DNA of 62,673 nt, filler included, from Choristocarpus tenellus KU-1152 (GCA_964200185.2; 10 parts of 10 records of this genome joined end to end with filler, not necessarily neighbours in it); one strand, 5' to 3'. Shown: positions 43,250 to 45,833, counted from the first letter of the whole stretch. Notes: generated from the letters alone by a model not told the origin. A program made the numbers and translations.

Positions 43250-45833
43250 ATGGACACCAGGATATACTTCGTACCCATGGGGTACATCTCCCTCTTCACC
43301 CGAGTCGGAGACGTGGGTTCCATCTACGAAGAACTACAAAGAATCATTGTCAAGAAAGCCGATGCGACGGAGGCAGTAGCAGAACAGCGGAGTAACTTGA
43401 CAGAATTCGACATTGCGGAGTACATCCCCAAAGGGGAGTTGGGGAGATCAACCAACAAAGGGGATTACAAGATGCCCGATAACTTTGATTGCTTTGTATC
43501 GGCAATGAGAAAAATCTGCCGCTACGGGGAGGAGTGGAGACCTGAGAAGAGGAGAACGGTGGGAGTGATAGAAGGATTGGAAGAAGCTAGGAGTAAAGTA
43601 AGGACGTTTTATGGGGTCAATATACCATAATGCTAGTGTATCGTATCGAGCAGTGAGGAAAGACTTGGCACCAAGGGCAAAAGAAATGTGAACGTCCGCA
43701 GATACCATCAGCAATAACCACTTCCTCATAAGCTTGAAGTCTCTCAGTAGCACCATCTATAACCTTAACACTTGCCCTTATTATAGTATCACCCGCTCTA
43801 AACTCTGGTACTTCTTTATTCTTAACAAACTTACCAATTTGATTTTTTTCAAATTGAGTACCTGAGGGGATGAGCCCATCCCCCACACAGCGGTCGGCCG
43901 GTAAAACGAGACCCATGGACGTCAACACCACCACAGCCCGCATACCTGACAACAGGGATTCCAAGACCAGGACATTTACACCGGGCAATCAAAGGTAGAG
44001 GAGGGGTGGGGGAGGCTTAAGTAGAGACAGAATTGAAGAGTGGTTTGGGACTTGGGAGAAGTTGAAAAGGAAAAAAGAGGTATCCAAAAATATACTGCAG
44101 GAGTTGAAGGAGTTAGCAAGTAAGGGTGAAGGGTCGAGTGTGGGGACGATTTGGAGCGATTAGTAGCCAGGGTGGAAAGGAGATGAAGCCCTGAATGTAT
44201 GAACTGGGGTAAGATTGAAAGTCATTTCGGAAAGAAGATAGGATTCACACAGATAGAGAGATAGTGACAAGTAGTTCAAGTAGGGGTACTGCTAAGCGTT
44301 ACAGGAGAGGATAGGGTAGAAGGGAGGCCAGAGTATAGGAACCATAGGATCGCATGCAGTAATTTACAAAGGGGCATTGTTACAAAAGGTGGTAGGGGAT
44401 ATGGTTCAGGGTAGGGCATTGGTGTTTCCCAAAAAGAGAAGCGGCAAAGATTCCAGGACTGTGTTTGTCCCCAGTGGGAGTAGTTCAAGAACCCACCAAA
44501 GTAGGATTATTCATGATTTGTCGTGTCAGCAAGAGAGTTGGGGACCGAGTGTGAATAAAGGAAAGGACTTAAGGGATGCCCCACCTGTGCATTGTGTACT
44601 GTGCTGGGGGACGCGATTAAGAGCATAGTAGGTCTAAGGAAGAAGTTCCCCAAGTTGAGAATTATGATTAGTAAGATGGATGCGAAGGATGCCTTTCGCC
44701 AGGTACCAGTTGAACCAAAGGGGGCTGCTAGGTTGGGTACTGTGTTGAAGAATTTGTGGTGATAGACTTCAGACTTCAATTTGGAGGAATAGCCCGGGGT
44801 GGTGGAACCTAATGGCAAGTGCTCTTCTACCATTGCAAAAAAATCCCCTGTCTGCAGTCGTAGTCCCTGGAACCGATAGAATTACTGGAAGTGTGAGACA
44901 TTCCCCACAGATAGGAGAAATATATGTGAGTCGGATGAGACATGGAAGGTTCCACAAGTCTTGGAGGGGGGAGGTAGTTGACCCTTTTTTGCTAGGATTT
45001 ACGTGGATGACATCATTTCGGTGGATGTTCAATGGTTTGAGGATGGGAGAAGATTGAGGTTGTCAACAAATTCCTTATTGTCTAGCCATATACGATTGCT
45101 AGTTCATTGAAAGGTAGAGGAACCCCCCATCTTGTCAGCTAAAACAAAGTTGACATATTAGCATACCACACAGGTAGTATTAGGATGGAAGTAAGATACT
45201 GAGGCCATGACGATTGCACATTGCCAGACGGGAAATTAGCGGGATTGAAGGGATTGCTAGAGGAGTGGGCAGAGTTGAGGCCAGTAGCATGGGTATGGGA
45301 CATTTGGGTATTGATTGGGAAACTTTTCCACATGTCATGCGTTGTACACCCGGGAGGATTTTTCCTTTGGGAGCTGGTGTATTTGTCGGGGTTACACCAG
45401 GAGGGGAGCTGGCTAAGAAGGATAGCCCATGGTAGTGATCAAAGAGAACAGAGTGCGGGTGTGAGGGCAGGAGACAGGGAGGTCAAGATAGGTAGAGAAT
45501 TCAACAAAAACGTGTATTGATGGAGGCGGGGAAAATCTGAGCGCCCCCTTTAGGGGATTTGTGGTGAGACCACCAGTGACGACTTGTTTTTCAGATGCGT
45601 GTTTTACAGCAGGAGCCTATAATGTAGAGGCGGATAAGTGGTAGAGGTATGAGTACCCGGAGTGTGTGAAGAAGGATATTGCACAAAGTGCAATAAAAGG
45701 GGTGGTAGGGAGTATATAAATCAATTTATTGGAATTGTTGGGGATGGTGGTGAATGCGTGCATCTTGGTGTGAAGGGAGGAGGTAGGGCAAAGAAGAAGG
45801 GAGACGCAGTACTGTTAAGAGGGGACAACAAGT
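43250..45833 (+). mobile_element. Degenerate tyrosine-recombinase (DIRS/Ngaro-like) retrotransposon: gag-like ORF, RT and RNase H remnants
   Basis: RIIHDLS, KMDAKDAFRQVPV, LQFG, YVDDII (~45000), LPDGKLAGL, and RNase H FSDACFTAG / INLLELLGMVVNA / LLRGDN; many stops and frameshifts; truncated by MITE A at 45834. The recombinase itself is not in the contig. Confidence 0.75.
43711..43860 (-). pseudogene. rplS: Fragment of bacterial-type ribosomal protein L19 gene
   Basis: Translates to TQFEKNQIGKFVKNKEVPEFRAGDTIIRASVKVIDGATERLQAYEEVVIA, matching the L19 signature PEFRxGDT...V.V.EG..ER.Q.(Y/F)EGVVIA; ~35% GC by hand count; no start or C-terminal half. Confidence 0.85.

Follow-up and report, generated by a model that had tools for sequence, protein, structure and literature searches.

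A 147-bp fragment of a bacterial gene for ribosomal protein L19 (rplS) lies within a copy of a highly repeated element that shows reverse transcriptase (RT) motifs. It is probably a true insertion, present as a single copy, of DNA that came from an unsampled lineage of Rickettsiales; the element copy that received it was already dead. Sequence comparisons suggest that the relatives of the donor include marine bacteria with a trmD-rplS arrangement as well as the Megaira-type symbiont associated with Nemacystus decipiens, a brown alga. All positions refer to the window, that is, the whole stretch of 62,673 nucleotides that was analysed; the piece that carries the fragment spans 42747-45896 (3150 bp) and has a plus strand rich in purine and G, with a GC content of ~48%.

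Identity and ends of the L19 island

The sequence of the island corresponds to the N-terminal half of a bacterial L19 gene. It was matched by the Pfam family PF01245 (E 5.8e-7, 29.9 bits, exceeding the gathering score of 22) and by TIGR01024 (E 6.7e-9), for which its 35.9 bits fall below the full-protein/equivalog cut-off of 90.7. When bacterial L19 proteins were compared with the piece by tblastn, one match was obtained (E 3e-21, 80% identity), which covers residues 7-54 and includes one extra codon; no other part of L19, including the C-terminal half, was found elsewhere in the piece with these queries. When five bacterial rplS genes were aligned with the DNA of the piece, the homology was seen to start abruptly at a CAA codon (43856) and to stop abruptly at a GCT codon (43710). 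The preliminary description had placed an antisense, N-terminal L19 island in the middle of the piece at 43711-43860, and this was borne out with the adjusted limits given in Table 1. The AT-richness reported there (~35% GC) was also recovered: the island has 34.7% GC, compared with 48.4% in the remaining piece and 47-52% in its flanks, and the dip is single and sharp (43722-43871, 36% GC, calculated over 150 bases).

Table 1. Features of the L19 fragment, its junctions and the surrounding element, with positions in the window
Feature	Position	Strand	Evidence or remark
Inverted partial copy of ORF1 C-terminal region	42758..42966	-	Equals L089 701-492; reaches further than the island-truncated copy
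First ORF of host element, gag-like position	43202..43630 (ORF 43250-43630, 126 codons, intact)	+	55% protein identity, L089 69-494
Decayed continuation of first ORF, cut by island	43625..43717	+	Inverted counterpart of 42854-42965; ends at ~L089 605
Left junction overlap, 8-9 bases	43710..43718		Matches both the rplS end and element sequence
Bacterial rplS fragment, L19 residues 7-54	43710..43856	-	Pfam, TIGR, tblastn, DNA alignment; 147 bp, 49 codons
GAA (Glu) replacing Gly	43722..43724	-	Gly in 87/87 related L19 proteins
Tandem ATA ATA, in-frame one-codon insertion	43779..43784	-	Alignments; absent from all relatives
Right junction, 17 bases before colinearity with related element	43857..43873		Unlike rplS, weakly element-like
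Degenerate pol-like region, RT-type motifs, many stops	43874..45810	+	Colinear with L089 995-2973, 68.5% DNA identity

State of the fragment

The fragment has no start codon and lacks residues 55 to the end; it also carries a duplicated codon and a Gly-to-Glu replacement at an invariant site, and it is therefore non-functional, so that L19 cannot be made from it. The duplicated ATA codon and the YEEVV wording in place of YEGVV had both been read as signs of decay, and both are present in the sequence (Table 1). The decay is real but only slight, and most of the divergence is synonymous. Third codon positions hold 21-28 of the 32-44 differences between the island and six relatives, and the dN/dS values in these comparisons (0.05-0.11) are the same as among the bacterial genes themselves, indicating that most of the divergence arose in the bacterial lineage. 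The slight decay accumulated after transfer suggests that the transfer was fairly recent and that the donor belonged to a lineage that has not been sampled.

Bacterial affinity of the fragment

A word-indexed search covering 5.8 billion proteins yielded 14 L19 proteins, the best of which, P0001, comes from marine metagenomes and is 80% identical to the fragment; a group of proteins (P0002-P0009) follows with 71-76% identity, and within it P0005 reaches 76%. At the DNA level, the island is 75-77% identical to the rplS genes of loci L001-L007; since this is the best DNA identity found, the donor lineage can be regarded as unsampled. The loci of the relatives have 32-34.5% GC, versus 34.7% in the island. 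On the contigs of the relatives rplS comes after trmD, and the two contigs that encode P0005 (166 kb and 163 kb) have among the neighbouring genes members of PF17542 (RP853) and PF17460 (RP854), families that take their names from genes of Rickettsia prowazekii.

Genes of the RP853 and RP854 families were also observed directly after rplS in L001 (7359-8991) and L002 (6508-8140); some samples have a small, variable ORF in between. The two marine contigs, which are the closest to the fragment, represent uncultured, Rickettsiales-like lineages.

A scan of GTDB with one genome per species gave as its top three matches a Rickettsiales MAG (69%), an alphaproteobacterial MAG (71%) and the 'Ca. Megaera' endosymbiont of Nemacystus decipiens (69%). 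The remaining genomes were at 65% or below, and no other full-length match exceeded 59%. The Nemacystus symbiont is the sole Megaira-type genome in the comparison set, and at 69% identity it is more distant from the fragment than the marine lineages, with 80% at the protein level. A metagenome scan for a closer donor gave a best value of 67% among the matches listed. No close phage L19 was found; a phage origin was considered and rejected, as the best phage-borne L19 genes are just 45-58% identical.

In a maximum-likelihood tree of L19 with 92 rows (Rickettsia, Wolbachia and plastid rows absent), the fragment, represented by 49 residues, was placed inside an 18-row clade with an SH-aLRT support of 99. 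This clade contains both named Rickettsiales rows together with metagenomic proteins, and the row nearest to the fragment is P0001; the support for a finer grouping with the Megaira-type row is only 81. The placement of these 49 residues and the synteny of the relatives point to a Rickettsiales origin for the fragment, which agrees with the Rickettsiales-like affinity first suggested for it, the nearest relatives being Rickettsiales that include the Megaira-type symbiont of a brown alga.

The host element

The sequences flanking the island are related to L089, a 2977-base contig of an NCBI assembly, with ~68% DNA identity over 43417-43614 and 43874-45810. An exhaustive HMMER search with a 99-residue piece of the pol-like region (45221-45517) identified six relatives, one of which lies on L089. 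Sub-threshold matches to RVT_1, all in the same region of the profile, were obtained for P0033, the L089 ORF and P0034 (E 0.0057, 0.22 and 0.26, respectively). The usual RT motifs are visible in the sequences of these RVT_1-matching relatives and RT-type motifs can also be seen in the translation of the window, whose own pol pieces gave no Pfam match. For the first ORF there was no Pfam match, no homologue in the word search and no exact record. Rfam and tRNA scans gave nothing informative, and neither did Pfam on the ORFs of a further contig (L090) or a comparison of a profile of the element relatives with solved structures. From these motifs and alignments it is reasonable to regard the host sequence as a retroelement. 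The island had been described as lying antisense within a DIRS-like element; what stands is its position antisense to the ORFs of a repeated element with RT motifs, and no tyrosine recombinase was detected in L089, in L090 or in the 3150-bp piece, which may be part of an element.

The ends of the piece show a 19-base inverted match (42748-42766 with 45830-45848) and G runs of 10-11 bases, and an inverted copy ~110 bases long lies inside the piece. In both of the sequencing runs described below, contigs link 45859 back to 42747 through the same 19 intervening bases, which suggests a tandem or circular-junction arrangement of the element.

The end of ORF1 in the related contig (L089:606-990), which is the part replaced by the island, includes a Cys/His-rich stretch with a C...C...C...H spacing. 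This stretch had no Pfam match, and its spacing is reminiscent of the nucleic-acid-binding zinc knuckle of Gag proteins.

Anatomy of the insertion

The first ORF of L089 extends ~500 bases beyond the point equivalent to 43630. In the window a decayed continuation of this ORF follows and is cut by the island. The inverted partial copy located to the left offers a second view of this region: its segment 42854-42965 and the reverse complement of 43625-43717 share 76% identity, and the copy also holds the next ~100 bases of the ORF, which are missing at the island edge. As the inverted copy carries this continuation, the element family in this genome does have the sequence that is missing here. 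A counterpart of 42747-42853 beyond the island was looked for, and the alignment was no better than those of shuffled sequences; the sequence to the right of the island was therefore rejected as a homologue of this left arm.

Colinearity with L089 breaks at ~605 and restarts at 43874, which is equivalent to L089 995. Since the homology to ORF1 ends at the island and colinearity resumes only at 43874, the island was not simply added to the element; it replaces ~370 bp of the first ORF, as judged from an empty site that is reconstructed from a 68%-identical relative and the internal inverted copy. The insertion of a larger antisense block of 360 bp that would have included the island was also considered and was rejected, because the sequence from 43874 onward is colinear with L089 and 43625-43717 continues ORF1 in the sense direction.

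The two junctions differ. At the left one, the bases shared by the rplS end and the element match today's sister arm at 6 of 8 positions, and this overlap may be a microhomology that was used in joining. At the right one no overlap was evident, and the 17 bases that precede the return to colinearity are probably element sequence. TACC was noted near both junctions in the preliminary description and is indeed present, at 43703-43706 and 43859-43862. A target-site duplication was rejected as its explanation: the left TACC is native element sequence, and the sister arm has AACC there. The repeats probably carry no meaning.

Junction support in sequencing runs

A search of sequencing runs found the stretch in two runs (X1 and X2), which come from two samples of one organism in one study. 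A contig of 1078 bp from X1 covers 42972-44049 with 0 differences and a depth of 11.6, and a contig of 908 bp from X2 covers 43423-44289 and is identical to the window across the island and both junctions, to about 44126. Whether other copies of the element carry the island had been proposed as a check; only one contig per run covers it, and in both runs the depth of the island bins is that of this contig. The depth of the flanking element bins, in turn, climbs to hundreds in both runs, and for the last 105 bases of the piece (45792-45896) the summed contig depth is ~1.1e5 in X1 and 3e4 in X2, versus ~12-25 for the unique parts. This difference in depth indicates that the host sequence belongs to a very abundant repeat family and that the island is single-copy. 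The very high repetition of the flanks fits a nuclear repeat, and the fragment would accordingly reside in the nuclear genome.

Further to the right, between 44127 and 44263, the X2 contig with the island differs from the window by ~30 substitutions and several small indels, with a 9-base insertion after 44135. This divergence in sample S2 could represent either allelic variation or the entry of the contig into another copy of the element.

Another contig from X1 (depth 12.7) matches 43482-43558 and 43644-43664 and then continues from 43944 onward, with sides of just 21 bases; it has four variants at 43501-43522 that are shared with X2. It is possibly a paralogous copy of the element without a 279-base block (43665-43943) that includes the island.

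Origin of the insertion

The reading that we prefer is that the fragment was incorporated during the repair of a chromosome break. An intracellular bacterium would have released DNA inside the host cell, a double-strand break would have occurred in a chromosomal copy of the element, and end joining would have taken up the bacterial DNA as filler, while the part of the element that had lain between the ends was lost. Break repair and capture by the retroelement had both been proposed at the outset. The first of these is favoured by the deletion at the target, the short antisense filler, the overlap at one junction, the single copy and the fact that the host copy was already dead. As a molecular fossil, the fragment records contact, past or present, with a bacterium of the Rickettsiales.

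Capture by the element itself would have required its reverse transcriptase to switch to a bacterial rplS transcript and back, copying 147 bases and skipping ~370 of its own. We regard this as unlikely, although it is the alternative with most in its favour: the island sits within an element with RT motifs, internal element sequence was replaced, the short overlap seen at one junction is frequent in such switches, and rplS mRNA is plentiful in bacteria. The orientation argues against it, since a first-strand switch onto a sense mRNA would place the fragment in sense and the island is antisense. A template switch would also be more likely to leave a copy that had transposed, of which there is no sign. 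Its presence as a single copy, on one contig per run, gives no hint that the island was ever carried by an active element, and the host copy is full of stops. Recruitment of the island as an exon hardly seems plausible. On the minus strand a pyrimidine run and AG precede the island, GT follows it, and an open frame of 123 codons (43617-43988) runs through it. However, this strand is pyrimidine-rich, so that stops are rare and long ORFs common; the flanks of the ORF are without homologues, its 123-residue product has no exact record, and there was no RNA run among those containing the stretch. Moreover, the L19 piece amounts to half a domain. We regard the splice-like signals and the ORF as chance features of a pyrimidine-rich strand.

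The remaining alternatives concern the source of the sequence. Bacterial reads could have been misjoined into a host repeat contig, for which the setting is favourable, the piece being a short contig of a repeat family and Rickettsiales-type bacteria co-occurring with a brown alga. Contigs of two samples nevertheless span both junctions with no difference and with a depth like that of neighbouring unique contigs, about that of a single copy, which makes an assembly chimera very unlikely; these contigs were built from short reads, and the assembly itself may derive from one of the two runs. Element sequence lies on both sides of the island, and the extra codon and the Gly-to-Glu change would not be expected in a live rplS, so the argument from decay against simple contamination, made when the island was first noticed, holds for these two changes. 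A source in a host organelle or in an organelle-targeted gene (plastid rpl19, a mitochondrial gene or a nuclear gene for mitochondrial L19) is suggested by the fact that AT-rich islands in nuclear DNA are frequently organellar, and brown-algal plastids encode rpl19. Against it stand the 80% protein identity to bacterial genes, the trmD-rplS synteny with Rickettsia-specific neighbours and the placement in the tree inside a clade that contains Rickettsiales. In a search that covered all solved structures, though not the plastid rpl19 of the host itself, the top matches were ordinary bacterial bL19 proteins with at most 34 bits, and no L19 from a chloroplast or mitochondrion came within E 1. An organellar origin was therefore rejected as highly improbable, and a plastid source in particular would seem very unlikely given the tree placement and the relatives found.

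Significance

Rickettsiales of the Megaira group are common yet poorly understood partners of algae, and Nemacystus is so far the one case in which a brown-alga project has provided a genome of this group. If verified, a nuclear fossil of a related bacterium in another host would mean that such bacteria were so close to the heritable cells of that host that their DNA could be fixed in them. The island provides a marker that can be tested by PCR, with which the association could be dated and traced across strains and species. With repair as the presumed route, it would also be a clean case in which bacterial DNA served as filler when a break in a eukaryotic chromosome was repaired. A functional consequence of the fragment is unlikely.

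A broader suggestion can be made only tentatively, and we hold it to be rather doubtful: the host may have, or may until recently have had, a Megaira-related endosymbiont from an unsampled lineage of Rickettsiales whose DNA passes into the nucleus, with the fragment as one of several such insertions. The near-absence of decay, with a dN/dS like that of live genes and a frame that is still open, allows for a recent or ongoing association. If this were true, nuclear fossils would offer a record of the history of the symbiont across brown algae.

Comparison with known systems

Transfer of symbiont DNA to the nucleus is already known as a kind of event. A limited literature search found no report of Rickettsiales DNA in the nucleus of a brown alga. 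In Wolbachia-to-host transfers and in NUMT and NUPT filler, short pieces of cytoplasmic DNA are end-joined into the nuclear genome, often with target deletion and microhomology, and are non-functional. The fragment resembles these cases in being short and non-functional, in the loss of target sequence and in the few bases shared at one of its junctions; it differs in the donor and host groups, and the repair process proposed here is read from the anatomy of the junctions alone.

Compared with a bL19 gene, the fragment aligns at 80% identity over residues 7-54, but it is not a gene: its 35.9 bits are below the TIGR01024 cut-off of 90.7, it has neither a start nor the residues from 55 onward, one codon has been added, and a Gly that is otherwise invariant has been replaced.

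The genome of the 'Ca. Megaira' (Megaera) endosymbiont of Nemacystus decipiens (MegNdeciBESST) was reported by Davison et al. in 2023, with no nuclear integration reported (PMC10132079). This associate of a brown alga belongs to the Rickettsiales; in the tree its L19 falls together with the fragment, and the 31.75% GC of its genome (PMC10132079) is near the value for the island. It differs in being 69% identical in both protein and DNA, the marine lineages being nearer.

The direct rickettsial-algal precedent is Volvox carteri, in whose nuclear genome ~9 kb of Rickettsiaceae-type endosymbiont DNA with four genes was described in 2015 (PMC4324946). That insertion is much longer and lies in a green alga, whereas here 147 bp of one gene are found within a repeated element of a reportedly brown-algal host, and the donor lineage, unlike that of the Volvox case, is unsampled. 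In both, rickettsial DNA of a type found in algal endosymbionts occurs in what is, or here would be, an algal nuclear genome, and is read as the record of a past symbiont.
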